Sequence record: NC_048054.1
DNA length: 64,000 nucleotides
Reading direction: 5' to 3' (one strand)
Part shown: piece by piece, positions 9,931-33,002 of the stretch
Position numbering within the stretch: the first letter of the stretch is position 1
Layout of the letters: the number at the start of each line of letters is the position of its first letter
The notes under the pieces: generated by a model
What the model was told of the DNA's origin: nothing
Databases searched by the model: none
What the model saw: only the letters and a program-made list of their open reading frames with translations
Translations under genes and position numbers: made by a program

Positions 9931-10473
9931 ATGACGGATAAGATTACGCAGTTGGAGAAATGGTACGAAGCGGCGAAAGTCGCGTTCAAGATGGGCACTG
10001 TCAATCCTGATGGTGATGCCGCACTGCTTCTGGCCATCTATAAGCGATTGGCGAAAGCTGCCGAAGATTCGGGTGACAAAGACACTGTGACAGCAGATCG
10101 GTTGAATCTGCAAGAGTTCCTTGAGGACCTACGCAAAGAACTCCGCATGTACGACCTGATCTGCCGCCGTTTCAATACTGACTTGTACCCACACATCAAA
10201 GTCAGTGAAGACGTTAAAATCTATATCGCGCTCATGGCAACAACGCCAGGCAGTGCGGTAATGGCAATGACATATCTGTACCTTGCTCGCTGCTACACGC
10301 TGCAAGACATGGTGCTGAATTTCCTGCCGAGTGGTTACCCTGGTGAAGATGCTCTTGGCCTTACGTGGAGCATTCAGAAAGGGAACAGCGATGCCTTTAC
10401 CGGAAACCTGGTGGACGATATCGAAACTGTAAATAGCCTGTACAATAAGATGTATAACTCGGGAGATAAGTAA
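9931..10473 (+). CDS. Hypothetical protein
   Basis: 180-aa ORF with GAGG SD. Confidence 0.55.
   Translation: MTDKITQLEKWYEAAKVAFKMGTVNPDGDAALLLAIYKRLAKAAEDSGDKDTVTADRLNLQEFLEDLRKELRMYDLICRRFNTDLYPHIKVSEDVKIYIALMATTPGSAVMAMTYLYLARCYTLQDMVLNFLPSGYPGEDALGLTWSIQKGNSDAFTGNLVDDIETVNSLYNKMYNSGDK
10427..10435 (+). promoter_or_regulatory. CTGTAAATA candidate promoter
   Basis: Exact copy 38 nt upstream of ATG 10473. Confidence 0.5.
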
Positions 10474-11066
10474 TGGATTTGTCTGCTATCGGTTACGCTC
10501 CGAAGCAGTTCCGAGTAATCCCCGTTGAGAAGGGTAATCTCGTTACTGACTTCATTCAAGGTAAGTTCCGCGTTATCGGCGTTGAGTGCAACGCTCGTGG
10601 TGCTTACGGTAGTCCTATTCAAAAGAGTATCGCACGTCGCTTCCCGGAAGTTGTGCGCAAGGTCGAATCTATCGACTACGAACACGAACTAACAATCGGT
10701 AAGACGCACATGGTGCGTGTTGGTACTCAACATCGCCGCAATATGTTTGTTGCTAACATGCACATTGCTCGCGGTTTCGGTCTCGGCCTGAATGGTTCTG
10801 CTGAGGGCTTTCATAAGCCTATCAATCGTTTCAGTGAGAAGTTCCTGACGCGAGCATTTGAAGATATGCTGGAGCAGTGCGACAAGCTGAACATCGCACT
10901 CGACAGGCAGATCGCCATTCAGCGTTTCTATGGCGGACTCGGCGGGGTTTCGTGGGAAGAAGTATGTGCTGTCCTTGATGTTATCTGTGAGAAACATCAG
11001 TTCAACATGTACGCATATCTCCCACGCAACTACAACACTAACTATGTGCGGGGCGTTGCGCAATAA
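10473..11066 (+). CDS. Macrodomain protein (ADP-ribose processing, DarG/Poa1-like)
   Basis: KGNLV, CNARGAYGSPIQKSIARRFPE, IAIQRFYGGLGGVSWEEV match the macrodomain pattern. Confidence 0.7.
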   Translation: MDLSAIGYAPKQFRVIPVEKGNLVTDFIQGKFRVIGVECNARGAYGSPIQKSIARRFPEVVRKVESIDYEHELTIGKTHMVRVGTQHRRNMFVANMHIARGFGLGLNGSAEGFHKPINRFSEKFLTRAFEDMLEQCDKLNIALDRQIAIQRFYGGLGGVSWEEVCAVLDVICEKHQFNMYAYLPRNYNTNYVRGVAQ

Positions 11067-12232: not shown

Positions 12233-13003
12233 ATGAGCAACGTTGATAAAACAATGCCAGAAGGTCGCTGGGAGTTTAATGAGCCAGTAGCTTCTGTATT
12301 CGATAACATGCTGCAAAACTCAATCCCATCGTATGACCGTATGCGTGACCTGACGTACCGTCTTGGTCGCCAGTTCGTAACACCCGGTTCGGCCATTGTC
12401 GATCTGGGTGCATCACTCGGTCGTGCTATCGAACCGTTCTGTGCTGAGTTCGGTGAGTATCGTTATCTCCATGCTGCTGATCGCCCTGAGCCAGATCGTG
12501 AAGTAGGTAACCTGTACTGCTGCTACGAAGTCGCACCTGCGATGCTTGAGCGTCTGCGTGAAAACCCTGTACTGAAAACTGCTAAAGCGCAAATCAGTAG
12601 CGAGTCGCTGGTGGAAGTAGACACGTTCCGCTTCGACGAGCAGGTTGAGTGCTCACTGATTCTGTCTGTGCTCACTCTCCAATTCACGCCGATTGAACAT
12701 CGTCAGCACATTCTGGAGAAAGTGTACGACTCGTTGCAGAAAGGCGGCGCGTTTATTCTGGTTGAGAAAGTGTTGGGTGACGACAACTTCCTCGACCGTC
12801 TGCTGGTAGACACCTACTACGGCATGAAAGGCGATAACGGTTACTCGCAAGAATCTATTGCGGCTAAACGTAAGTCCCTCGAAGGCGTACTGGTGCCTGT
12901 GAAAGCTGCATGGAACGAAGAACTGCTGCGTAAAGCTGGCTTCGACCGTGTAGAGTGTTTCTACCGCGACCTGAACTTTGCTGGATGGATCGCAGTCAAA
13001 TAA
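12233..13003 (+). CDS. cmoA: CmoA-like carboxy-S-adenosylmethionine synthase
   Basis: WEFNEPVASVFDNMLQNSIPSY, DLGASLG, TLQF, VEK, NGYS...AKRKSLEGV, AGF...NF match the CmoA pattern including the carboxylate-binding KR arginine. Confidence 0.85.
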   Translation: MSNVDKTMPEGRWEFNEPVASVFDNMLQNSIPSYDRMRDLTYRLGRQFVTPGSAIVDLGASLGRAIEPFCAEFGEYRYLHAADRPEPDREVGNLYCCYEVAPAMLERLRENPVLKTAKAQISSESLVEVDTFRFDEQVECSLILSVLTLQFTPIEHRQHILEKVYDSLQKGGAFILVEKVLGDDNFLDRLLVDTYYGMKGDNGYSQESIAAKRKSLEGVLVPVKAAWNEELLRKAGFDRVECFYRDLNFAGWIAVK

Positions 13004-13014
13004 GGTAAAACGAA

Positions 13015-14070
13015 ATGAGCGTAAGTGGTGATATTTATAACATCCCCCAACCGTTCGCCATGTATTGTGGCAACTGTGAAACTCGTGCTCAGGCAAAAGT
13101 GGCCTCAGGCACAATTGAATGGGCTCCAGAGAAAGTCTGCTGCGTTGTTGCAGACGATAACGGCCTGTTCCCTGATGTTCCCCACGTCAACATCGCAAGC
13201 GTCCACGCTACAGATGCGCGTACTCTCGTAATCGGCTGTGCGCCGTTTGGCGGTAAGATTGACGAGCACATGGACCGCACTATTCGCAGTGCTATCTATC
13301 GTGGTCTGAACGTCGCTGCTGCAATGCACAATCGTCTGGCCGATAATGCCGAATACGTTGCGCTGGCTGAACAGTACAACGTCAAGCTGTATGACTTCCG
13401 TCATCGCCCTGATGCGTACCCTCTCGGTACTGGTGAGAAGCGCAAAGGCATTCGTCTGCTGACTGTCGGCACTGATAGCTCTTGCGGCAAGAAGTTCACG
13501 ACGCTGACGCTGCACCGCGCACTGAAAGAGATTCACGAAGACACCGTGTTCTGTTCAACTGGACAGACTGGCTTCCTGATCAGCAACTGTGGTATCAACA
13601 ACGATACTCTGGTGGCTGACTTCCTTGCTGGCGCTGCCGAGTCATTATCGCCTGACGGTCCTGCTGATCGTATCTATCTGATCGAAGGTCAAGGTGCTAT
13701 CACTCACCCAGCTTATACTGGCGGCAGCATGAGTCTGATTGCTGGCTCGCAGCCTGACTACTTCATTATGTGCCACGCGTACGGACGTAAGAACCAGCTC
13801 GGTGTTAAACGTGCGCCGAATTTGATGTTCGAATTGAGCGCCAATATGGACGCTGCTGCAATTCACGGCCTAACTCCTAAGTATCTCGGTATCAGTGTCA
13901 ACTTCTCTGAAAGCGGCCTGACGATTGCGGAGCAGAACGAAGTGATGTGCGATATGCAGCATATGTACGGTCTGCCTGTATTTGACCCGTCGCGTGATCA
14001 AGAGTATATCGCAGAGATCGCCAATAAGCTCCAGCAGGAAGCAGAGAGCAGGAGCAATGCGAATGGCTAA
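13015..14070 (+). CDS. DUF1611 / DgcN-like P-loop protein
   Basis: TLVIGCAPFGG, MHNRL, RLLTVGTDSSCGK, TGQTG, VADFLAGA, IEGQG, HPAY, QPD, GISVN, LPVFDP. Confidence 0.85.
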   Translation: MSVSGDIYNIPQPFAMYCGNCETRAQAKVASGTIEWAPEKVCCVVADDNGLFPDVPHVNIASVHATDARTLVIGCAPFGGKIDEHMDRTIRSAIYRGLNVAAAMHNRLADNAEYVALAEQYNVKLYDFRHRPDAYPLGTGEKRKGIRLLTVGTDSSCGKKFTTLTLHRALKEIHEDTVFCSTGQTGFLISNCGINNDTLVADFLAGAAESLSPDGPADRIYLIEGQGAITHPAYTGGSMSLIAGSQPDYFIMCHAYGRKNQLGVKRAPNLMFELSANMDAAAIHGLTPKYLGISVNFSESGLTIAEQNEVMCDMQHMYGLPVFDPSRDQEYIAEIANKLQQEAESRSNANG

Positions 14071-14932
14071 ACATCCTCTTCGCAAGCTGTTTGAACAGCA
14101 CGTAAAGAAAGAGGTCAAAGCCAAAGAAGTGGCCGTTCTGCTTTCGAGCGGCCTCGACGGTTTGGTTAGCGCACTCGCCGCGCATGATCTCGGCATGAAG
14201 GTACATGCCTTTACTTTCCAGATGGGCGACAACCAGAGCTTCGATAGCAAACACGCTGCAATCGTCGCACAGAAGATGGGCTGGGAGTTCACGCTCGTCA
14301 AAGTGCCTACCTCTGACAGTGCTATCGCTCAGGGCTGGAAGACGCTGCATAAAAAGTTCCGCTGCATTAAGAAGCGTGACTATGAGTGTGCGTACCCTAT
14401 GGTGTATTGCTACAAGGCGATCAAAGAAGCTGGGTTTAAGTACGTGCTCAGTGGTCTGGTGGCAGACGGTTACTTCCTGTATAACCGCAATACGCACATT
14501 CAGAAAGTAAGCGGCCCGCACTCAGTCGCTGAAAAGTATCACGCGTACCGCACCGAATACTTCCGACCGTGGATCAAAGACGGTAAGAAGTCTCTCGGTG
14601 TTGACGGGTATAACCCAAGCGGTATGCTGCAACACGAAATGCTGTGTGACCACTTCGGCCTTGTTCACGTTAACCCGTGGATGCAGCCGAAAGTATTTGA
14701 TTACTTCATCAAGTACACATGGCAGGAACTCAATCAGCCCAAGCAGAAACAACCTATTACAGAAGCATGGGCTGACCACATCGCTATTGTAGGGCATCGC
14801 CCGCATCGCGGATATCAAACAGAAGCTGGAGTACCTGCGTACTTCGAACGCTTACTGGATAATCCTGAGATCAACTTCAACGGGCGCAAGCGTATCATGG
14901 ATGTTGCCCGTGATTGGTCAACGAGGACGTAA
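14063..14932 (+). CDS. Asparagine-synthetase-like ATP-dependent amide ligase (synthetase domain only)
   Basis: PP-loop VAVLLSSGLDG, VLSGLVADGYF, NP(W) motif; no glutaminase domain; AGGAG SD supports ATG 14063. Confidence 0.7.
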   Translation: MAKHPLRKLFEQHVKKEVKAKEVAVLLSSGLDGLVSALAAHDLGMKVHAFTFQMGDNQSFDSKHAAIVAQKMGWEFTLVKVPTSDSAIAQGWKTLHKKFRCIKKRDYECAYPMVYCYKAIKEAGFKYVLSGLVADGYFLYNRNTHIQKVSGPHSVAEKYHAYRTEYFRPWIKDGKKSLGVDGYNPSGMLQHEMLCDHFGLVHVNPWMQPKVFDYFIKYTWQELNQPKQKQPITEAWADHIAIVGHRPHRGYQTEAGVPAYFERLLDNPEINFNGRKRIMDVARDWSTRT

Positions 14933-14933
14933 C

Positions 14934-15554
14934 ATGTTAGTACACATCATTGACGGTGGCGTAGGCTGCAATTATGTAGCTGAAAAATTGCGTGAGTCGA
15001 ATATCAACTGTCGCACACACGCTCCAAACAATCCGCGCATTCGCGCTCAGTATGCTCCTTACCCTTCACTGTCTATGGGCTTTGAGGCACAGGAGATCGA
15101 GAAACATATCGGTAACGTGCTGGGCACCTATCGCGGACTGTTCCTGATCAGTAGCTACGTCGGCTCTCTTGTCGCACGTAGCATGATTGATCAATGCGGC
15201 CAGAGCCATAACATCATCTATTGCGATGACTTGCAGTGTGGCTCAACGCCTGTTGTTGCTTCCTCAATTTCTGTAAACATCTACAAGAAGCAACGGCAAC
15301 TCGGACGTATCGCTGGGCGCATCAAACACTTCGACCTTGACCACGAATTTATTATCGCTGATAAGTCAGTGCGGTTCGCGTCAGGTTCGGAGTTCGATGA
15401 ACACGGCGCGCGTGAAGAACTGGACGATACGCCTAAGTTCTTATCGAGTCCGTCAATGATTGTTGCAGCACACAAACTCGGTGTGAAGCGCAGCATGTAT
15501 CACAACTATGCAGGGTTGGTGCGAGAGTTCCTCGAAAAGCGCCAGCAGCAATAA
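14934..15554 (+). CDS. Divergent Asp/Glu-racemase-like protein (putative)
   Basis: N-terminus HIIDGGVG...APYPSLS...LFLISSYVGS parallels MurI IGVFDSGVGG...PYG.KS...IVIACNTAS; catalytic CNT not conserved. Confidence 0.35.
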   Translation: MLVHIIDGGVGCNYVAEKLRESNINCRTHAPNNPRIRAQYAPYPSLSMGFEAQEIEKHIGNVLGTYRGLFLISSYVGSLVARSMIDQCGQSHNIIYCDDLQCGSTPVVASSISVNIYKKQRQLGRIAGRIKHFDLDHEFIIADKSVRFASGSEFDEHGAREELDDTPKFLSSPSMIVAAHKLGVKRSMYHNYAGLVREFLEKRQQQ

Positions 15555-16528: not shown

Positions 16529-16822
16529 ATGATTAGTGACATTACAGTCGGCCATATCTACAAGTCGCCCAGCGACAAGCCATTTATTGTTGACTGCATT
16601 GCTGCACACGGACAGGATTGCTCACTGCCTATGGTTGTCTACCGTAATCTCGAACCTACGGCAGACAGACCTGCCGATAGCGTGTGGGTAATCCCTGAGT
16701 CGTTGTTTGTGATGCAGTTCTCTGAGTACGAATCAGGAGAGCACCATGAACACAACGAGCTTGTATCATCATCTGGAATCAAGGGGGTTTGCTCCTTCTT
16801 CCTATCACTGTTGGCTAAGTGA
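16529..16822 (+). CDS. DUF1653-like protein
   Basis: GHIYK...FIVDCIAAHGQD...MVVYRNL...VWVIPESLF. Confidence 0.55.
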   Translation: MISDITVGHIYKSPSDKPFIVDCIAAHGQDCSLPMVVYRNLEPTADRPADSVWVIPESLFVMQFSEYESGEHHEHNELVSSSGIKGVCSFFLSLLAK

Positions 16823-17259
16823 AACGCAAATGACCGTGCCGCTGTTTGGCTTTGATCGAGCCATGCGCGGTCTACAGGTCTACACACCCGATGCACCAAA
16901 GCATGATAAGAACCCGAAAGCGTGTCGTTACTTTACGCGAGCATTCGGCGGCAAGCAGTTGGTGTGGGGATCGGAAATTAAACCTGAACGGGTCGACCGT
17001 ATTCTTAACTGAGTCTGTATTCAAGGCGTGTGCTCTGCATCGCGTTGGACTCAACGCTTGGTCCGTTCTAGGTTCGGATGTTAGTCTGCACCTATATCAT
17101 CAGTTGCGTCTGCTTGGTCTACGTTTCGTCTGTCTTGGTGATGACGATGCCGCAGGTGAAAAGTTTAGTCAGACGTTTGGACTAGGCACCACCAGCAAAG
17201 ACCTTGACGAAATGACTGACAGTGAACTTCTCGATTTAACTCTCCCATTCGTAAGGTAA
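16746..17259 (+). pseudogene. Small Toprim/primase-like gene split by a +1 frameshift
   Basis: ORF 16746-17012 (...RYFT...VWGSE) continues in the +1 frame as LNLNGSTVFLTESVFKA...GDDDAAG...KDLDE; one extra A near 16975-16982. Confidence 0.65.
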
Positions 17260-18353: not shown

Positions 18354-19196
18354 ATGACCGTAATCAGTCCAATCCGTTATCAGGGCAATAAGCGAAGCCT
18401 TATCCCTCTTATTCTTGAGCACACACCAAGCGTACAAGACTGTCCGCGTATGGTCGATGTGTTTGGTGGTAGCGCTACTGTCTGCGCAAACATGCCACAG
18501 AAGTTTCGCGTGTACAACGAGCTTAGTCCTCAGGTGTTTGAGATCGTTAAGATGCTGGTGGAACAAGACCCGAAGAAAACTCTCGGTCAAGTCAAGCGTC
18601 TGGTCAAACACTGGTGCCTGACAAACAGCAACGAAGCGAACTATGATGCGTTTCGAACTGTCGTCCAGAAGAAGCGTACACCGATATTGCATTACGTTGC
18701 ACACAGACACGCACACTCGAACATGCTGCGCTTCAATCAGCAGGGTGTGTACAACGTGGGATTCGGTGATCGTGGTCTGATTGGAAAGTTCGACGAGCTG
18801 GAGCATGAACTCACTACCTTCCACAGTCACATGCAGGGCGTCCACCTGACGAACATGAAGTACGGTAAGTTGCTGAGTCGCTTAGGCCATCAACTGAACT
18901 GCAACACGTTCTGTTATTTCGACCCGCCTTATCTGGCGAGCGGCGCAATGCAGTATGGCAAGTGGACTGAAACGAACGAGCGTAACCTGCTTGCCACTTT
19001 GGAGCAACTCAATCGTTTAGGCGTACCGTGGATGTTGAGCAACGTTACTGAGCACCGTCACTTCTCGAACGACTTGCTAAAGCGTTGGCTAAAGAAACAC
19101 GCGACTACCGTGCTGTACCCAAACAAAAGCTATGCGATGAACAACGGCCAGAGCGGCTCGCATGGTACTGTTGAAATTCTGGCAATGAACTACTGA
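18354..19196 (+). CDS. dam: DNA adenine methyltransferase (Dam/D12 class)
   Basis: SPIRYQGNK, VDVFGGSATV, YNEL, FCYFDPPY, WMLSN. Confidence 0.9.
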   Translation: MTVISPIRYQGNKRSLIPLILEHTPSVQDCPRMVDVFGGSATVCANMPQKFRVYNELSPQVFEIVKMLVEQDPKKTLGQVKRLVKHWCLTNSNEANYDAFRTVVQKKRTPILHYVAHRHAHSNMLRFNQQGVYNVGFGDRGLIGKFDELEHELTTFHSHMQGVHLTNMKYGKLLSRLGHQLNCNTFCYFDPPYLASGAMQYGKWTETNERNLLATLEQLNRLGVPWMLSNVTEHRHFSNDLLKRWLKKHATTVLYPNKSYAMNNGQSGSHGTVEILAMNY

Positions 19197-21638: not shown

Positions 21639-22029
21639 TGATGCCTCGTCAGATGAAATCCGCCGTTACTACGAGCAGATTCATCGTGATGCCGAAGCGA
21701 TCATGCAGCAGGTGTGGGCGCTTCGTGGTTGGACTGTGCGTTGGGAATGGCACAATGGCATTTGCGACGACTGCGAGTTTGTCTTTGACGAGACAGGCAA
21801 GTGTCGTGGCACTAAGTCTGACTGCATCCCACAGCAAATGGGCATAGCTGATCGCATTGACGAGCTAAAGCTGTTTGTTTCCCACACCAAGAAATCTGTA
21901 AAGATCAGCAACAAGGGCGATGCTAATCCAGTTGAAGGTAAAGGCCGTAATCTTCGGCTTGCTTATCTCGACTGGTTGCTCAACGTCGAAAAGAGAAAAG
22001 CGGAGGAAAGAACGTGCGCTGCACCTTAA
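21619..22029 (+). CDS. Hypothetical protein
   Basis: ATG 21619 in frame with track ORF 21598. Confidence 0.5.
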   Translation: MYRQLSDDASSDEIRRYYEQIHRDAEAIMQQVWALRGWTVRWEWHNGICDDCEFVFDETGKCRGTKSDCIPQQMGIADRIDELKLFVSHTKKSVKISNKGDANPVEGKGRNLRLAYLDWLLNVEKRKAEERTCAAP

Positions 22030-22535
22030 ACGAATTACCGATTAACATCACTCAGGCTGAACACATCATGGCGAGCGTGTTTACTCTTGCTGGTGCGTCA
22101 AAGTCAAAACGCCGTGCGACTGCCGCAATGTTGATTCACTTCCATAATGGTTTTCCTACCATTATCAGCAGCGGCGTGAACGGTACGGAGCCGGGTGCAA
22201 GCAACGTCATGGAAAACGAAGACCTGACGTTATCGCTCGACACCGTTATTCATGCAGAGGTGAACTGCCTCAATCGCATGGAAGAGTACAGCATGTGGGC
22301 TGACGAAGCAGACATTCTGTTTTGCACCGATTCGCCATGTCCTAACTGCTTGGCTGATCTCGAAGCCGAAGGCGTTAAGACCGTTGTGTACGCGCGTGAG
22401 TATCGCCTGACTGATCATCTGGACGCATCTCCCATCAAGATGTTCTGTCTGGATATGGACAGCGTTGTCCAGCGTATGCAGCACGGCATCGACCGCATCA
22501 AAGAAGTGATCGCAACAACACCAGCGTCTAACTAA
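22014..22535 (+). CDS. Deoxycytidylate (dCMP) deaminase
   Basis: SGVNG, HAEVN, TDSPCPNC zinc-deaminase motifs. Confidence 0.85.
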   Translation: MRCTLNELPINITQAEHIMASVFTLAGASKSKRRATAAMLIHFHNGFPTIISSGVNGTEPGASNVMENEDLTLSLDTVIHAEVNCLNRMEEYSMWADEADILFCTDSPCPNCLADLEAEGVKTVVYAREYRLTDHLDASPIKMFCLDMDSVVQRMQHGIDRIKEVIATTPASN

Positions 22536-25849: not shown

Positions 25850-26199
25850 TGCCTCCTGTAATTCGTTTCAACGAGCAAACCCGTGAACTGCTGAAAAAGA
25901 CTTTCGGCATTGATTCACCTTTCATTGTCGTTCGCCGCGAGCGCATCATCGAAGACGATAAGTCTTTCGGTGATCGTGTTTATTTGAACAACGGCATTCA
26001 TACCGTGACTGTGCCTAACGTACAGGGTCTCGACTTCGGCGATAAGCTGTATCTCGCCGAAGATATGGAAGTGTATGAGTGGCACTCGCACTTCGGCCTT
26101 CATCCTAACATTCATCATTCTGTAAGCAATAACCAGAAGACTGCGCTCTCGTTCGGCCTTCATCCTATTATCTACCACAAAGACAGTCGGAACTCTTAA
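25849..26199 (+). CDS. Hypothetical protein
   Basis: 116 aa, TAATG coupling on both sides. Confidence 0.5.
   Translation: MPPVIRFNEQTRELLKKTFGIDSPFIVVRRERIIEDDKSFGDRVYLNNGIHTVTVPNVQGLDFGDKLYLAEDMEVYEWHSHFGLHPNIHHSVSNNQKTALSFGLHPIIYHKDSRNS
26092..26167. repeat. 16-bp direct repeat, 60 nt apart
   Basis: TTCGGCCTTCATCCTA at 26092 and 26152, encoding FGLHP twice. Confidence 0.6.
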
Positions 26200-27305
26200 T
26201 GAGCAAACAACAAACTCTTGATCTGCGCGATCCAAATCAGTACGAACTCTACTCGTTGCATTGCGTGGACGAGCAGTACATCAATCTGGGCAACGCTATC
26301 ATGATGCACGGTACTGACGAAACGGACCCAGGCCGCACCGAAGATACATGGCGCACTCTGATTGGTATTGGCTTCCAGTTGTCTAACACGCTGATCGCTT
26401 TCCCTGCGCTGGTGTCTGCGCGTAAGAACTGGTACGCTGCTGTAGATGAAATGTGCTGGATGGCGCGCGGCGAAACGAACATCGGCAGCCTCAATTCCAA
26501 AATCTGGAACGAGTGGGCAGACGAAGACGGCGAGTGCGGTCCTATCTACGGTCTGATGTGGCGCATGTGGCCTGATATCAAAACGTTCCCGACTATTGAG
26601 TCGATGAAAGAACGTCAGATCAGCGATGCTGAAATCGAACGTATCTCCAAAGAGATCAATCGCATGAAAGCCGCTGGTTATACCGAAACACAAATGGCCG
26701 ATGGCCGTGTGTGCTACGAAGGTACGATCGACCAGTTCGCTGATGCTCTGCGTCAGGTGATGAATCGCAGTCGTTCGCGCCGCATTCGCGTTCAGGCGTA
26801 CAACCCTGCGTATCTCCACATGCAGGGTCTGCCTCCGTGTCACACCGAGTTTGAGTTCAACGTCACTAAGCCGACGCTGTACGAAGTTGCTCAGATGGAA
26901 GCGCGTCAAATGGCACCTGCCGAAGACACGTTGCATATCACTGTGACCATGCGTTCCAATGATGTGTTGCTCGGGCGTCCCTTCAACATCATCGGCTATA
27001 GCGCGATGCACCAGATGATCGCCAAGTGGGCTGGCCTGAACGTCGGTAGCTTTACGCTGAACACTACCAACACTCACCTGTATACGCATCACTTCGAAGC
27101 GTTTGAAAAGCAACGTGAGCAGTGGGCAGTTCTCGCAGACAACATGAAACGCACAGGCGAACCTGTTGTCTATCCTATGCTGGAAATCAGCGACGACATT
27201 CTCGGCCTGACGCCAGAAGAGTTGCTGGACAACGCCAACGCAGAATGGTTCCAGCTTCTCGATTATGCACCATCACCAGCGGTTAAGGGACGTGTGACCA
27301 AATGA
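26199..27305 (+). CDS. thyA: Thymidylate synthase
   Basis: EMCW, IWNEW, GPIYG, SRR, LPPCH, RSNDVLLGRPFN (dUMP-type Asn), HLY. Confidence 0.92.
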   Translation: MSKQQTLDLRDPNQYELYSLHCVDEQYINLGNAIMMHGTDETDPGRTEDTWRTLIGIGFQLSNTLIAFPALVSARKNWYAAVDEMCWMARGETNIGSLNSKIWNEWADEDGECGPIYGLMWRMWPDIKTFPTIESMKERQISDAEIERISKEINRMKAAGYTETQMADGRVCYEGTIDQFADALRQVMNRSRSRRIRVQAYNPAYLHMQGLPPCHTEFEFNVTKPTLYEVAQMEARQMAPAEDTLHITVTMRSNDVLLGRPFNIIGYSAMHQMIAKWAGLNVGSFTLNTTNTHLYTHHFEAFEKQREQWAVLADNMKRTGEPVVYPMLEISDDILGLTPEELLDNANAEWFQLLDYAPSPAVKGRVTK

Positions 27306-28892: not shown

Positions 28893-29228
28893 ATGAAATA
28901 TGATCCGAAGAAAGACTTCCATCCGTTCCAATATCTGGGTGCACCTAAAGTCCCGCACACAGGCTTCTTAGGTAACACAGTGAATTTGGTAGAGAACGAT
29001 GTAAACATCGGCAGCGATGAATGCACGTTCGAGTTCACTGTGGCTCAGATGAATCAGATGGATCGAGGTACTGTTACGTTCAGGGCTAAAGACTCTGGCG
29101 GAGGTATCGACATTAAGAAATGCTCTGTCTCAGGTCTGAAAATGGTAATTAAGCTCGACCGACGAGTGATTGAGTTTGGTAAAGTTCAAGTTGAATGGCA
29201 GACCACTCCTCGTCACTACTATTACTGA
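28893..29228 (+). CDS. Hypothetical protein (possibly late-expressed)
   Basis: ATG 28893 after AGGAG; track start 28872. Confidence 0.55.
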   Translation: MKYDPKKDFHPFQYLGAPKVPHTGFLGNTVNLVENDVNIGSDECTFEFTVAQMNQMDRGTVTFRAKDSGGGIDIKKCSVSGLKMVIKLDRRVIEFGKVQVEWQTTPRHYYY

Positions 29229-29246
29229 ATCTGTAAATAGACAGAG
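29227..29246 (+). promoter_or_regulatory. CTGTAAATA candidate promoter
   Basis: GAATCTGTAAATAGACAGAG, identical to 7757-7776; upstream of the ParB-MTase operon. Confidence 0.55.
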
Positions 29247-29273
29247 AAAGAGCAACCGATAAGAGATACGACA

Positions 29274-29984
29274 ATGGCAAAAACTGCTATCAAAGCAAAG
29301 GACGGGAAAAAGAAAAAGAATGACGGACTAAAGTTTGAGTTGAAGAAACTCAACTCCGTCGCTCAGTTGAAAGGTGCGGCGTACAACCCGCGCTTCATTA
29401 CAGACAGTCGCCTGAAAGCGCTCGAAGGTTCTTTGGGTAGTTTCGGCGACCTGTCTGGTATCGTGTTCAACAACAACGTCAAATCGGGCGTGTTGATCTC
29501 TGGCCACCAGCGCCTGAAATCAATCGAAGGCTGGAAGACTCGTATCGAGATCCAGAAGTCTGTTGACAAGCACGGTACAATCGGCCTGGGCTATATTCAC
29601 GCAACGCATCCGAAGAAAGCTGATAAGGTGATCAGCATTCCTCTGCGTGTCGTGAACTGGACCGATAAGAAAGCGGAGTATGCTGCGAACATCGCGGCGA
29701 ACGCTCATGGCGGTGAGTTCGACAACAAAAAGCTCGCCAAGCTGGTTGAACAACTCGACCTCAATACAATCAAGCCTCAACTGCTTGGTCTTGACCCGTT
29801 AGAAATTCGTGGTCTGCAAGCCAAGCTGAAAGTTCAGGCCGTTGTGCAGGACGAGAAACGTGCTGGCAAGACTACTGGCCAGATGAACGGTAGTACCGGC
29901 AAGTTCAATGAGTACAGCCCTGATGATGTGGGCGAAACTCTGAACTGCACCTGCCCGCGTTGTGGATTCAAGTTCGAGGGATAA
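29274..29984 (+). CDS. ParB/Srx-like domain protein
   Basis: AAYNPRFI, LISGHQRL, NIAAN...GEFD, C-terminal CPRCGFKF. Confidence 0.75.
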   Translation: MAKTAIKAKDGKKKKNDGLKFELKKLNSVAQLKGAAYNPRFITDSRLKALEGSLGSFGDLSGIVFNNNVKSGVLISGHQRLKSIEGWKTRIEIQKSVDKHGTIGLGYIHATHPKKADKVISIPLRVVNWTDKKAEYAANIAANAHGGEFDNKKLAKLVEQLDLNTIKPQLLGLDPLEIRGLQAKLKVQAVVQDEKRAGKTTGQMNGSTGKFNEYSPDDVGETLNCTCPRCGFKFEG

Positions 29985-29985
29985 T

Positions 29986-32115
29986 ATGATCATCAAGCCG
30001 CCTACGATGAAGGAAATCAACAAGCTAGATAAACCCTGGCGTGGTATGAGTTTCTTCGCAGGTTGCGGTGGTTCTTCTACCGGTCACAAGATGGCCGGTA
30101 TCAACATCGTGCTGAGTAACGAGTTCGTTGACCCAGCGCGTGAGTCGTATGAAGCAAACCACCCGACAACCAAAGTGCTGCCGCATGACATTCGCCGTTT
30201 AGACCCAGGTAAGTTGTTACGCTTCGCTGGTCTGGCTAAAGGCGAATTGGATTTACTTGACGGTAGTCCTCCTTGCTTTACCGAAGACACTATCATTCAT
30301 ACAGCAGACGGCATGAAGTTCATTTCGGACATGAACGTCGGCGATAAAGCGATGACAAGTATTGGTCAGTATCTTCCTGTGTATGACACTATGGTTAGAC
30401 CATATGTCGGTACCATGCACAAGATTGAAACGCTGATCAGTAGCAACAACGCAACGCCTGAGCACCCGTTCTTCGTTCGTCGTCCGCTTGAATCTGGTGG
30501 CTTCTCTGACCCGTTCTGGTGTGATGCTAAAGACGTGCAGGAAGGCGACTTGGTTGGTACACCACGAACTACTCCTGATATCGGTGCTGATGCAGTACAT
30601 GCGCAAATGGAACAACTGCCAAAGTTGATTCAGCAGTGGGTGTGCATCCCTGAGTTCTGGTGGATGGTCGGTCACTGGTGTGATCGCGGTTCAATCGAGA
30701 CTGTTAGTGGCGTAGAAGTTGTTAGCTTCGAATCGCACACCAGCCTCGAAAATGCGATGATTGAGCAAGCGTTTGATGCGCTTAAACTTAGCAGTCTGAA
30801 TCGTATCGACCGCATGACCGCACAGCGCAAAACGTTCCGCACTGTTATCGACGCCGAGCTGGTGCAGTTCCTGCGCCGCTTCGTCAGTGCTGGCAATAAC
30901 ACGTTCTCTCGCCGTCTGCCTGCTTTGGTGTTCCACCTGAGCACCGAACTGAAACGTCAATTCATTCTCGGCTGTGCTGGGCATGACTACGTTACAGCGA
31001 TGGGCACTGGTCTTGCTATCACGTCTGCAAGCAAACGCTTCCTGCTTGAGCTGAACTACCTGTGCTGTTCAGCTTTCAATCGTCCTCTGTTTGACGGTAT
31101 GATTTGGGGTGACGTGTATTTCGGTAACGCGTTAACTCCTCGTGAGCGTAACAGTTCGCGTGAGCATCTCGGCTATCTGTTCCTGCAGGAAGAGCACAAC
31201 TTCTTCCACGAGTTCGATAAAGAAGACCCGAACCTGTGGGTTGAAGTGATTGAGAACCTTGCGTATCAGGCTACTTGTGACGTCTATAACTTCTCTGTTG
31301 AAGTTGACGAAACCTACGTGGCTAATGGTACTGTGGTGCATAACTGCAAAGGCTTCTCGACTGCTGGCGTGAAAGAAGAAGGCTGGGGCAAAGAAGTTAA
31401 GTACAGTGATAACAAGTATCAGCAGGTTGATGACCTGTTCGATCAGTATTGCCGTATGCTGGAAGGCATGATGCCGAAAGTGTTCACTGCGGAGAACGTT
31501 AGTGGTCTTGTTAAAGGAGCCTCGAAAGGTTACTTCCTTGAGATCATGAAAGAGTTCGACAGGATTGGGTATTACGTCCGAGCGCCGCTGCTTAATGCTG
31601 CATGGCTTGGTGTGCCTCAGTCCCGTGAGCGTATCATCTTCATGGGTGTACGCAAAGACGTAGCACACGCTCTCGGCTATAAGAGCAATCAAACCGCTGT
31701 GCCTGATGTTGTGCCGTGTGAAACAATGGCGTTCCTTGCTGATGCGCTACCGCACATTCAACGGTATAAGTCCACGAAGAAAGATATCATTACGTATCTG
31801 CCTGCGATGAACGGACCGATGCCTACGATTACTGCGGCTGATGCAATCGCATATGAGACTGCACGATTCTCGTCTGCGGGTTTCATTGAAGACAACAAAG
31901 GCCATCGCCGTAAACTGACCATCGACGAACTCAAAGTTGTTTCTGGTCTGCCGTCTGATTATAAGCTGGTCGGCAAGTTTGAAGAACAATGGGAACGTCT
32001 TGGCCGCATCTGTGTGCCAGCAATGACACACGCCGCATCCAAAGCGCTTATCGAACACGTCTTGATTCCTTATGCGAAGAAGCGTAAGAAGAAGCCTGGC
32101 GATATCTTTAAGTAA
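29986..32115 (+). CDS. C5-cytosine DNA methyltransferase homolog with intein; candidate carboxymethyltransferase
   Basis: Motif I FAGCGG, IV GSPP-C(KGFS) after splicing, VI ENV, VIII QSRERIIF; motif X reads GRICVP instead of GN(S/A)VP. Confidence 0.85.
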   Translation: MIIKPPTMKEINKLDKPWRGMSFFAGCGGSSTGHKMAGINIVLSNEFVDPARESYEANHPTTKVLPHDIRRLDPGKLLRFAGLAKGELDLLDGSPPCFTEDTIIHTADGMKFISDMNVGDKAMTSIGQYLPVYDTMVRPYVGTMHKIETLISSNNATPEHPFFVRRPLESGGFSDPFWCDAKDVQEGDLVGTPRTTPDIGADAVHAQMEQLPKLIQQWVCIPEFWWMVGHWCDRGSIETVSGVEVVSFESHTSLENAMIEQAFDALKLSSLNRIDRMTAQRKTFRTVIDAELVQFLRRFVSAGNNTFSRRLPALVFHLSTELKRQFILGCAGHDYVTAMGTGLAITSASKRFLLELNYLCCSAFNRPLFDGMIWGDVYFGNALTPRERNSSREHLGYLFLQEEHNFFHEFDKEDPNLWVEVIENLAYQATCDVYNFSVEVDETYVANGTVVHNCKGFSTAGVKEEGWGKEVKYSDNKYQQVDDLFDQYCRMLEGMMPKVFTAENVSGLVKGASKGYFLEIMKEFDRIGYYVRAPLLNAAWLGVPQSRERIIFMGVRKDVAHALGYKSNQTAVPDVVPCETMAFLADALPHIQRYKSTKKDIITYLPAMNGPMPTITAADAIAYETARFSSAGFIEDNKGHRRKLTIDELKVVSGLPSDYKLVGKFEEQWERLGRICVPAMTHAASKALIEHVLIPYAKKRKKKPGDIFK
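30274..31344 (+). mobile_element. Intein (357 aa) with degenerate LAGLIDADG region
   Basis: CFTEDT start, ATPEHPF block B, VYNFSV...VVHN end, Cys+1 is the MTase catalytic Cys; decayed blocks WMVGHWCDRG and FILGCAGHD. Confidence 0.9.
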
Positions 32116-32125
32116 GGGTCGCTCT

Positions 32126-32230
32126 ATGTTTTATGCCGGGCTGGGAATAGGTATCGTGATTGGCGTCGTCCTCACGATATTCTGTCTGTGGTTTTTCTTC
32201 TTTAAGGACTTCGAGGTGTTCAAGCCTTGA
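32126..32230 (+). CDS. Small membrane peptide (34 aa)
   Basis: MFYAGLGIGIVIGVVLTIFCLWFFFFKDFEVFKP; not in ORF track. Confidence 0.45.
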   Translation: MFYAGLGIGIVIGVVLTIFCLWFFFFKDFEVFKP

Positions 32231-32263
32231 TTCAATCGGACAAGGAAGTCCAGGAGATTTAAA

Positions 32264-32827
32264 ATGTCATACAGTTTAGTCCGTTCAATGATGATTGCGC
32301 ATGTGCAAGAAGGTCAGCTTGTTTGCTCTAAGTACAAGATCAAACTCGGAGGTAAAGACTCCACAACGCTGTTCAACTTCATGCACCGTGTCTTCTTTGA
32401 GTACAACGGGCGCATCCTGCTTGAAGACGAGCAGGACCGTGACCTGATGCCTACGCTTAACTATCGCAAGATGGCCAAAGTGCTGGAAGGTAACGGCAGC
32501 GTGTTCTCTCGCATTCTCCAGCTTGCCCAGAAGCACGGCGTTAACTGCCGTCTGGTCAACTGTTTTAAAGACACAACTGACGTGGCCTCTGTGTTCTATC
32601 TGACGCAGCCTTCGGCAGTTGCCTGTCAAGTTCTGGAGACAGACAAAGAAGACCTCTTCGGTAAGACGTTGTTCGTTGGTGCGGACTCAGACGTTGACTA
32701 CGTTGGCCGCAATGTTGTGCCTGTCGTATGTGATGATAACTTTGACGTGGATGATAAAGTTCTCGGCGTCAACATGTTCTCGCTGTACGATGACAGCAGC
32801 AAGCTGATGGTTCTGGTCGGTAAATAA
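32264..32827 (+). CDS. Hypothetical protein
   Basis: 187 aa, AGGAG SD. Confidence 0.55.
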   Translation: MSYSLVRSMMIAHVQEGQLVCSKYKIKLGGKDSTTLFNFMHRVFFEYNGRILLEDEQDRDLMPTLNYRKMAKVLEGNGSVFSRILQLAQKHGVNCRLVNCFKDTTDVASVFYLTQPSAVACQVLETDKEDLFGKTLFVGADSDVDYVGRNVVPVVCDDNFDVDDKVLGVNMFSLYDDSSKLMVLVGK

Positions 32828-32828
32828 A

Positions 32829-33002
32829 ATGATACGCTACCCGATAATATTCCTCGCTACATGGATTCTGGTAGCGTATTCGTTATCGACAATGGACGTT
32901 ACGTATGAATGGTGTGAGAAGATAGGCATCGTTAGTGCCGCACTCGTCACACACTTCGAAATCAAATGGCAACGTTTTATCAAGAGGCAGATCAATGAGT
33001 AA
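32829..33002 (+). CDS. Small membrane protein (57 aa)
   Basis: MIRYPIIFLATWILVAYS...; fills gap and overlaps next start; not in ORF track. Confidence 0.45.
   Translation: MIRYPIIFLATWILVAYSLSTMDVTYEWCEKIGIVSAALVTHFEIKWQRFIKRQINE

Follow-up and report, generated by a model that had tools for sequence, protein, structure and literature searches.

The closest described relative of the gene considered here is SpCmoX of Synechococcus phage S-B43, a cytosine C5-carboxymethyltransferase that depends on carboxy-S-adenosylmethionine (Cx-SAM) and whose structure is available as PDB 8YF3 (Yang et al., Nat Commun Dec 2025; PMC12783734). SpCmoX accepts Cx-SAM, not S-adenosylmethionine (SAM), and transfers the carboxymethyl group to C5 of cytosine; in Escherichia coli, 5-carboxymethylcytosine (5cxmC) arises only with cmoA present. 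Its R350 stands in for N304 of HhaI and contacts the carboxymethyl group of Cx-SAM, its SPPC motif corresponds to S95-P96-P97-C98, and the Glu of motif VI and the Arg of motif VIII of CmoX contact N4 and O2 of the cytosine. The neighbouring asparagine-synthase-like protein, SpCmoY, ligates glycine onto the new carboxylate, and carboxymethylated DNA withstands HhaI. The accompanying survey of UniProtKB and IMG/VR yielded 5,615 candidates, and ParBc-type neighbours were described for many members of the family (PMC12783734). An engineered precedent cited in the same paper is M.MpeI N374K, in which the motif X Asn gives way to a basic residue, allowing Cx-SAM to be used. Here, we compare with these systems the gene gp048 of Dickeya phage vB_DsoM_AD1 (hereafter AD1), a 261.7-kb jumbo myovirus of the genus Alexandravirus. 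The stretch analysed, which we call the window, comprises bases 1-64000 of this phage; its positions 29000-33000 are 100% identical to MH460463.1 / NC_048054.1, with coordinates unchanged.

The gp048 reading frame (29986..32115, + strand) encodes a precursor of 709 amino acids (aa) made up of an N-extein, an intein and a C-extein, with a predicted mature protein of 352 aa. It is annotated in the record as 'putative DNA-cytosine methyltransferase' and its RefSeq name is DNA-cytosine methyltransferase, just as a preliminary description, made from the letters of the window alone, had expected when it suggested that automated annotation would call the gene a plain Dcm. Family models place gp048 among the homologues of C5-methyltransferases (C5-MTases): PF00145 of Pfam matches gp048 in two stretches (E 3.7e-37), TIGR00675 dcm of NCBIfam matches it with 114 bits, over its cut-off, and motifs I, IV, VI and VIII of the C5-cytosine MTase fold are all present. 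The N-extein (aa 1-96; 29986..30273, +) carries motif I, FAGCGGSSTG, and the cofactor contacts F24, E46, F47 and D68, and ends in the GSPP of motif IV. The C-extein (aa 454-709; 31345..32115, +) carries the catalytic Cys454 (TGC, 31345-47), motif VI (AENVSGL), motif VIII (PQSRERIIF), a short target-recognition region, motif IX (RRKLTIDELKVVSGLPSDY) and motif X. E503 of motif VI (ENV) and R547/R549 of motif VIII (QSRER) are invariant in the MTase alignments A1 and A3. Motifs I, VI, VIII and IX are thus of the ordinary C5-MTase type. The preliminary description had called motifs I, IV, VI and VIII canonical, which holds for I, VI and VIII; motif IV is split by the intein, which had been mentioned only in passing, and reads GSPP / C-F-T-E-D...V-V-H-N / C-K-G-F-S, that is, GSPP...C.

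Motif X sets gp048 apart. Direct reading of positions 31987-32019 gives caa tgg gaa cgt ctt ggc CGC atc tgt gtg cca, or Q-W-E-R-L-G-R-I-C-V-P, so that the ERLGRICVP reported earlier, with its Arg codon at 32005-32007, is exact to the letter. GRICVP stands where GNAVPP would be expected of an ordinary C5-MTase. Whether the Arg really occupies the motif X Asn position was checked by alignment: in the MAFFT alignment A1, Arg674 (CGC, 32005..32007, +) shares its column with the Asn of GNAV in a P2-borne BspRI-like C5-MTase and in that of a Streptococcus phage, two phage enzymes of the ordinary kind that read ...VGNAVPP..., and the same column holds Arg in SpCmoX and in the homologues of the Yersinia phage and of Moraxella phage Mcat8. 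The residue corresponds to HhaI Asn304 and pairs with SpCmoX R350 in both the phmmer and the MAFFT alignments. Arg stands in this column in 111 of the 120 top-ranking database homologues of the gp048 C-terminal part, the closest 31 without exception, which places gp048 inside an Arg-bearing CmoX clade; judging by these 111 homologues, the Arg is not a chance substitution. Another seven of the 120 read WERLGNSVP (P0060, P0071, P0077, P0082, P0084, P0086 and P0117), where the CmoX-type proteins read WERLGR. At about 41-53% identity, enzymes of the Asn type and of the Arg type thus occur intermixed, a situation suited to tracing the evolution of the cofactor switch. Two further C5-MTase homologues have neither residue: that of Flavobacterium phage FpV9 (L007:3704-4768) reads IGMSVPP, with Met, and that of Methylophilales phage Melnitz-2 (L006:1204-2418) reads IGLMVAP, with Leu. 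These two may use yet another cofactor or be inactive.

The top solved-structure match to gp048 is 8YF3 itself, at E 8e-54 and in three collinear stretches. Residues 21-98 of gp048 align without gaps to SpCmoX 22-99, and F24, E46, F47 and D68 align with the SpCmoX cofactor contacts F25, E47, F48 and D69. The fold and its motifs, the SPPC motif, the motif X Arg and the adenine and ribose contacts are thus conserved between the two proteins. Both sequence features by which candidates were chosen in the CmoX paper, SPPC and an equivalent of R350, are found in gp048, the former as S94-P95-P96 followed by a Cys, which is the intein Cys97 in the precursor and would be Cys454 after the predicted splicing. 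The candidate set of that paper probably already contains gp048. M.MpeI (4DKJ) matches the AD1 enzyme weakly (E 1.4e-5) and differs from it in kind: its N374K variant is an engineered Lys form of a CpG methylase that still uses SAM, whereas the Arg of the AD1 enzyme is natural and its clade a separate one. With M.HhaI, M.HaeIII and Dcm (PF00145), gp048 shares motifs I, IV, VI, VIII and IX and, presumably, the mechanism through a Cys-C6 adduct; it differs from them in having Arg for Asn in motif X, its predicted cofactor being Cx-SAM and its predicted product 5cxmC, not 5-methylcytosine (5mC). Homology to SpCmoX thus supports the natural DNA carboxymethyltransferase predicted in the preliminary description, and we put at roughly 85% the probability that gp048 encodes an intein-interrupted CmoX-family DNA cytosine C5-carboxymethyltransferase. 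An attempt to read its target motif from the sequence was abandoned: the target-recognition region is unalignable with that of SpCmoX by MAFFT, and GC specificity should therefore not be assumed for gp048. The dinucleotide statistics of the window (GC observed/expected 1.16, CG 1.09) are uninformative on the target motif.

The most obvious difference from SpCmoX is a 357-aa insert at the catalytic Cys. The pieces of gp048 were searched separately, and natural intein-free relatives were used as the 'empty site'. The insert (Cys97...His452-Asn453; 30274..31344, +) has the features of a class-1 intein with a diverged LAGLIDADG-type endonuclease domain and sits between Pro96 and the catalytic Cys454, the Cys of the precursor 'SPPC' being Cys1 of the intein. 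The class-1 splice residues are present, namely Cys97 (TGC, 30274-76), block B T-P-E-H, the C-terminal VVHN (H452-N453) and Cys454 at +1, and the NCBIfam model TIGR01443 (intein_Cterm) matches with 22.3 bits against a cut-off of 15.6. A profile of the AD1 intein and three relatives matches the V-ATPase inteins 7QSU (E 3.7e-10), PI-SceI and PI-PkoII, as well as 2LWY and gp41-1; the V-ATPase inteins reached in this way contain LAGLIDADG. In AD1, the two LAGLIDADG motifs, WWMVGHWCDRGS and FILGCAGHDY, each keep an acidic residue and are atypical, and no Pfam LAGLIDADG model matches the AD1 intein. In the Yersinia phage the second motif is lost and reads GYQSRC. Two natural intein-free relatives, the P0047/L016 gene and the L029 gene, read MSPPCKGFSAAGV and GSPPCKGFSTAGV across the insertion site; they are continuous as SPPCKGFS(A/T)AGV, which is exactly the predicted spliced junction, and SpCmoX and five other MTases likewise have no insert at this site (alignment A1). 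Since the nucleophile of the MTase is also the +1 residue of the intein, enzyme activity must, if the intein splices as predicted, await splicing.

Within the clade, the intein has the same taxonomic tally as the CmoX that carries it (48 Erwinia, 2 Dickeya and 1 Yersinia records). Its identity ranges from 35 to 97%, against 74-97% for the C-extein, and this faster divergence agrees with vertical descent under a relaxed constraint on the endonuclease. C5-MTase inteins at the same P/C site of motif IV are found in Escherichia phage A4 (L013:3001-4038) and Pseudomonas phage Lana (L014:3001-4035). Like that of AD1, they start with CF and end with VVHN followed by Cys, and their LAGLIDADG-type middle domain is 22-24% identical to AD1's over the full length. 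They differ in that their LAGLIDADG motifs are better preserved and that their host MTases keep the motif X Asn (LGNGW and VGNSVPP), which indicates that the intein and the Asn-to-Arg switch are independent features. Judging from these sequences, the P/C of motif IV seems to be an 'address' used repeatedly by inteins of phage cytosine methylases.

AD1 also resembles S-B43 in encoding, with its CmoX, a CmoA and a CmoY-type ligase. These lie in the cassette gp016-gp019 (12233-15554), whose genes are tightly packed: gp016 and gp017 are 11 nucleotides (nt) apart, gp017 and gp018 overlap by 8 nt, and 1 nt separates gp018 from gp019. The CmoA homologue that the preliminary description had placed 17 kb upstream is gp016 (12233..13003, +), lying 17.75 kb from gp048 start to start. 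It is a predicted carboxy-SAM synthase and hence cofactor supplier, matched by TIGR00740 (E 3.3e-42, in two stretches separated by an insertion of about 20 aa) and by phrog_4752 (E 3e-80); its residues 11-256 align with E. coli CmoA 4GEK (E 4.8e-30), and it is 30% identical to the validated SpCmoA. The ligase is gp018 (14063..14932, +), which matches PF00733 over residues 33-165 only (E 1.4e-13) and consists, as in CmoY, of an asparagine-synthase PP-loop domain without the glutaminase domain. It is about 33-34% identical to SpCmoY (E 5e-52, over 276 of 289 residues), and sequence searches for a solved-structure relative of this ATP-dependent amide ligase returned none.

In contrast to S-B43, the AD1 cassette adds two genes. 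One of them, gp017 (13015..14070, +), is a DUF1611 protein with both domains of DgcN (PF07755 and PF17396), aligned over 319 residues with 7XRJ (E 2.8e-51); its NCBIfam DgcN (NF041892) score of 281.8 bits is under the cut-off of 480, so that it is not an equivalog. DgcN is a D-glutamate N-acetyltransferase (NF041892, 7XRJ), whereas the context of gp017 is a phage DNA-modification cassette and not D-amino-acid catabolism; we infer for gp017 an accessory role in the hypermodification, in which it would help to select or produce the amine that is attached to 5cxmC, or would modify this amine further. The other, gp019 (14934..15554, +), codes for an orphan protein of 206 aa that is conserved in the cmoA cassettes of the AD1 phage clade; it shares 61% identity with Y3 gp021 and 28% with a protein of the Yersinia phage. 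Searched as a profile against 1.84 billion proteins, it returned only 5 cluster representatives, all restricted to the clade, and no Pfam, NCBIfam or PHROG model matched it even at E 10; its AF2 model has a pLDDT of 54, and Foldseek returned nothing at E<=1e-3. A glutamate-racemase-like identity, suggested by eye from VFDSGAGG...CACNT in a Yersinia phage paralogue, found no support: no family model matched, phmmer against the PDB gave only chance antibody matches, and RacE ranked only 14th in Foldseek (E 0.09, TMq 0.42). Just upstream of the cassette lies a macro-domain protein annotated as O-acetyl-ADP-ribose deacetylase (10473-11066, +).

Unlike in S-B43, gp048 is not adjacent to this cassette but starts 14.4 kb past its end. 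Directly before gp048 lies gp047 (29274..29984, +), a ParB-like protein of ParBc type with a C-terminal ribbon of the CxxC...CxxC type. The ATG of gp048 (29986) is one base beyond the TAA of gp047 (29982-29984) and is preceded by a GAGGG Shine-Dalgarno sequence; the two genes thus look translationally coupled. There is no Pfam match for gp047, which matches phrog_620, 'ParB-like partition protein' (E 2.7e-32), and phrog_498, DNA methyltransferase (E 1e-18). The pair starts 13.7 kb downstream of the cassette, on the same strand.

Several lines of evidence tie the two loci together. CmoA, the CmoX C-extein (at at least 74% identity) and the intein are each found in 51 phage records, with the same composition given above for the intein. 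In the syntenic Dickeya jumbo phage JA11, homology searches gave no match to CmoA, CmoY or CmoX; its map has the primase directly after the gp015 equivalent, no cassette after the macro-domain gene and no MTase after thyA. This agrees with published data, in which AD1_016, 018, 047 and 048 are shared with Y3 and absent from JA11 (Day et al. 2018, Table 5). Moreover, the genes are contiguous in two metagenomic relatives: a 225-kb marine contig (L016) has, in order, a ParB-like gene (44% identity), CmoX (50-57%), a 105-aa open reading frame (ORF), CmoA (48%) and CmoY (28%), and a 74-kb contig (L029) has a ParB-like gene, CmoX, CmoA, a GT-B-like gene, DUF1611, an alanine-racemase-like gene and CmoY. 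The gp047 homologues (44-45% identity) lie directly upstream of CmoX in both, and the CmoX genes of both modules are intein-free. The shared tally, the joint absence from JA11 and the contiguity in L016 and L029 support gp048 as the split writer of the cassette, as had been proposed for the 12233-15554 operon, and it is well supported by these comparisons that gp047-gp048 belongs with gp016-gp019 and was split from it. Promoters or terminators shared by the two loci were not apparent, sigma-70 and terminator scans being at or near background, and no obvious shared motif was found in their intergenic regions. Outside the window, the radical-SAM gene AD1_267 follows the pattern of cmoA, cmoY, the ParB-like gene and cmoX, being likewise present in AD1 and Y3 and not in JA11 (Day et al. 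2018, Table 5).

Taken together, these data suggest a pathway of four steps. In the first, gp016 would turn SAM and prephenate into carboxy-SAM, as expected of a CmoA homologue. In the second, the 709-aa precursor would excise its 357-aa intein and join Pro96 to Cys454, creating the PC dipeptide of motif IV; the canonical splicing residues and the intein-free relatives point to this, and the precursor would be catalytically inactive because its nucleophile is parted from the rest of motif IV and used as the +1 splicing residue. In the third, by homology with 8YF3, Cys454 of the mature 352-aa enzyme would attack C6 of a flipped-out cytosine and the carboxymethyl group of Cx-SAM would be passed to C5, with Arg674 binding the cofactor carboxylate, yielding 5-carboxymethylcytosine in phage DNA; the ParB-like gp047, presumably on the same message as gp048, would be a conserved partner. 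In the fourth, gp018 would, like SpCmoY, adenylate the new carboxylate and join it to an amine as an amide, and gp017 (DgcN-like) and gp019 might, more speculatively, act on or supply the adduct. The likely pay-off, by analogy with HhaI on 5cxmC DNA, is that the phage DNA would resist host restriction.

The part of the cassette downstream of cmoA varies among close relatives. In AD1-type phages cmoA is followed by DUF1611, CmoY and gp019; in SNUABM_17-type phages by a 420-aa protein, DUF1611, an alanine-racemase-like protein, CmoY and a gp019-like gene; in Y3 and Yoloswag by a divergent ligase, a small ORF and a 2-oxoglutarate-Fe(II) (2OG-Fe(II)) oxygenase, then in Y3 by a gp019-like gene; and in the Yersinia phage by a weak PP-loop protein and two gp019-like proteins. 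The AD1-type ligase, at least 83.7% identical to AD1 CmoY, is found in 34 records (32 Erwinia and 2 Dickeya), and DUF1611 has the same tally of phage records. The second type, in Y3, SNUABM_5, 30, 35, 2, 39, phB78 and the Yersinia phage, is 22-29% identical to that of AD1 and thus less like it than the ligase of the cyanophage, SpCmoY. Across the clade CmoA is 67-99% identical and the CmoX C-extein 74-97%, while the ligase splits into these two deep types. In Y3 (L010:5297-7092) and Yoloswag (L011:5281-7085) the AD1-type ligase and DUF1611 are replaced by the divergent ligase and the oxygenase (PF13640, E 1.6e-15), beside a cmoA 86% and 68% identical to AD1's, respectively; this swap suggests a different hypermodification.

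Outside the clade, the link between DUF1611 and the ligase was found by looking up contigs that encode an AD1-type CmoY. In three unrelated metagenomic contigs with a ligase 57-70% identical to that of AD1, DUF1611 lies directly upstream or one gene away; IMG/VR pattern scans for DUF1611 relatives beyond the clade returned Alexandravirus-type contigs only. Fuller modules occur in Erwinia phage pEa_SNUABM_17 (L012:5282-8516) and in L027:5694-6950 and L029:4802-8032, with extra genes that are absent from the first 64 kb of AD1, namely a 405-420-aa GT-B-like protein and an alanine-racemase-like pyridoxal phosphate protein between DUF1611 and CmoY. The 420-aa protein weakly resembles GT-B glycosyltransferases (Glycos_transf_1, E 2e-4; 9V0L, E 3.6e-5). 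With such genes present, 5cxmC might carry an acidic or D-amino-acid adduct, which some phages would decorate further. That the AD1-type CmoY is strictly coupled to a DgcN-like (DUF1611) enzyme and that ligase cassettes are swapped suggests a different final base, and we tentatively propose, at somewhat less than even odds, that AD1 and its closest relatives make an undescribed hypermodified cytosine instead of 5gcxmC, the glycine adduct already published. The activity of the writer could also depend on splicing, given the position of the intein at the catalytic Cys.

Some observations weigh against the CmoX assignment or parts of the pathway. The similarity of gp048 to SpCmoX is moderate, with about 31% identity in the C-extein (tblastn), and the stretch of motifs IX-X alone matches it at only E 7e-4. 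The R350N variant of SpCmoX is inactive with both cofactors, and the Arg is therefore not the sole determinant of cofactor choice (PMC12783734). For gp016, the score of 144.8 bits is under the NCBIfam equivalog cut-off of 193.3 (TIGR00740), which we attribute to its insertion, and the intein scores under the Pfam gathering thresholds of PF14890 (Intein_splicing; 27-30 bits vs 35.8) and PF13403 (Hint_2; 22-23 bits vs 28.4). The roles of gp017, gp019 and gp047 are guesses, and the paper describing AD1 makes no mention of restriction, digestion or modification, nor of inteins. One could then argue that gp048 is an ordinary SAM-dependent 5mC methyltransferase of the Dcm kind that tolerates the motif X Arg, with CmoA serving, for example, host tRNA cmo5U synthesis. 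Every C5-MTase catalytic motif is indeed present, the classical role of CmoA is in tRNA modification (PMC12783734), and the Asn-type relatives among the 120 best homologues indicate that the switch between Asn and Arg is evolutionarily easy. Nevertheless, wild-type SpCmoX with the same Arg took only Cx-SAM (PMC12783734), CmoA and the Arg-type enzyme have identical tallies, are both unmatched in JA11 and form one module in L016 and L029, and the CmoY ligase of the cassette would be left without a substrate if the product were 5mC. We regard this alternative as very improbable.

Even more improbable, in our view, is that gp048 is functionally dead, either because the intein no longer splices or because the MTase is a decaying remnant, the cassette then acting alone or being vestigial. 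The low Hint and intein scores and the degenerate endonuclease motifs (GCAGHD in motif 2 of AD1, GYQSRC in the Yersinia phage) could be read in that way, but the ORF is intact over 709 codons in AD1, the Arg is kept in all six full-length clade homologues tabulated besides AD1 (692-711 aa), and Cys1, TPEH and VVHN/C are present in AD1 and the Yersinia phage, the two inteins that were read residue by residue. The greater conservation of the exteins (74-97% identity, vs 35-97% for the intein) also argues for purifying selection on the spliced product. A further alternative accepts the use of Cx-SAM and holds that the end product in AD1 is not an amino-acid amide of the CmoY type, but bare 5cxmC or an adduct made by the DgcN-like enzyme. 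We give such an outcome a little under half of the probability: the DgcN-like gene and the orphan gp019 are both absent from S-B43, the AD1 ligase is only about 34% identical to the glycine ligase SpCmoY, and the ligase type is swapped among related phages, whereas in AD1 and its kin the ligase is intact and conserved at 84% or more in 34 phage records. It would refine the last step of the CmoX pathway without contradicting it.

Some other genes of the window are noteworthy. A Dam-family N6-adenine MTase homologue (18354-19196, +) scores 103 bits, just under the cut-off of 114.85, and may give the phage a second DNA modification, to judge from this similarity. A dCMP deaminase lies at 22014-22535. 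The thymidylate synthase homologue (26199-27305, +) is unusually long, with 368 aa, and the best NCBIfam models match it in two stretches, which suggests an insertion of about 100 aa. Finally, two overlapping ORFs in different frames (16746-17012 and 16846-17259) occupy 16746-17259 (+), where the annotation of the record shows no more than a 60-aa 'DNA primase' (16830-17012); in Y3, too, two short coding sequences named 'DNA primase' lie side by side, and a split or frameshifted primase gene could be conserved in this phage group.

The CmoX family, its cofactor logic, its partnership with CmoA and CmoY and its ParBc neighbour were already published in December 2025, and our core claim, which the preliminary description had reached from the sequence by itself, is in this respect confirmatory. 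In that paper and the supplements searched, AD1, Erwinia, inteins and DUF1611 are not mentioned. A literature search returned no later paper on natural CmoX, and nothing on DNA modification of AD1, Y3 or PaBG nor on the MTase intein. The predicted intein at the catalytic Cys, the coupling of a DgcN-like protein to the AD1-type ligase and the swapping of cassettes within one phage group are thus, as deduced here from genomes, undescribed in the literature searched.

With gp048, the CmoX system gains a place among large phages of Enterobacterales (Dickeya, Erwinia and Yersinia) that can be cultured and that lend themselves readily to genetics and to mass spectrometry of their DNA; Cx-SAM is supplied by E. 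coli. Annotation pipelines should no longer name such genes 'Dcm' or 'tRNA methyltransferase'. Because the catalytic Cys is the +1 nucleophile of the intein, the writer would be made by protein splicing only, and ordinary methylases use the same insertion site. The exchange of cassettes among near-identical genomes, together with a DgcN-like protein as the fixed partner of one ligase type, suggests that 5cxmC has other amide, and possibly glycosyl, derivatives. If this is true, the jumbo phages of a single genus-level group would vary their DNA chemistry while keeping 5cxmC as the common handle.

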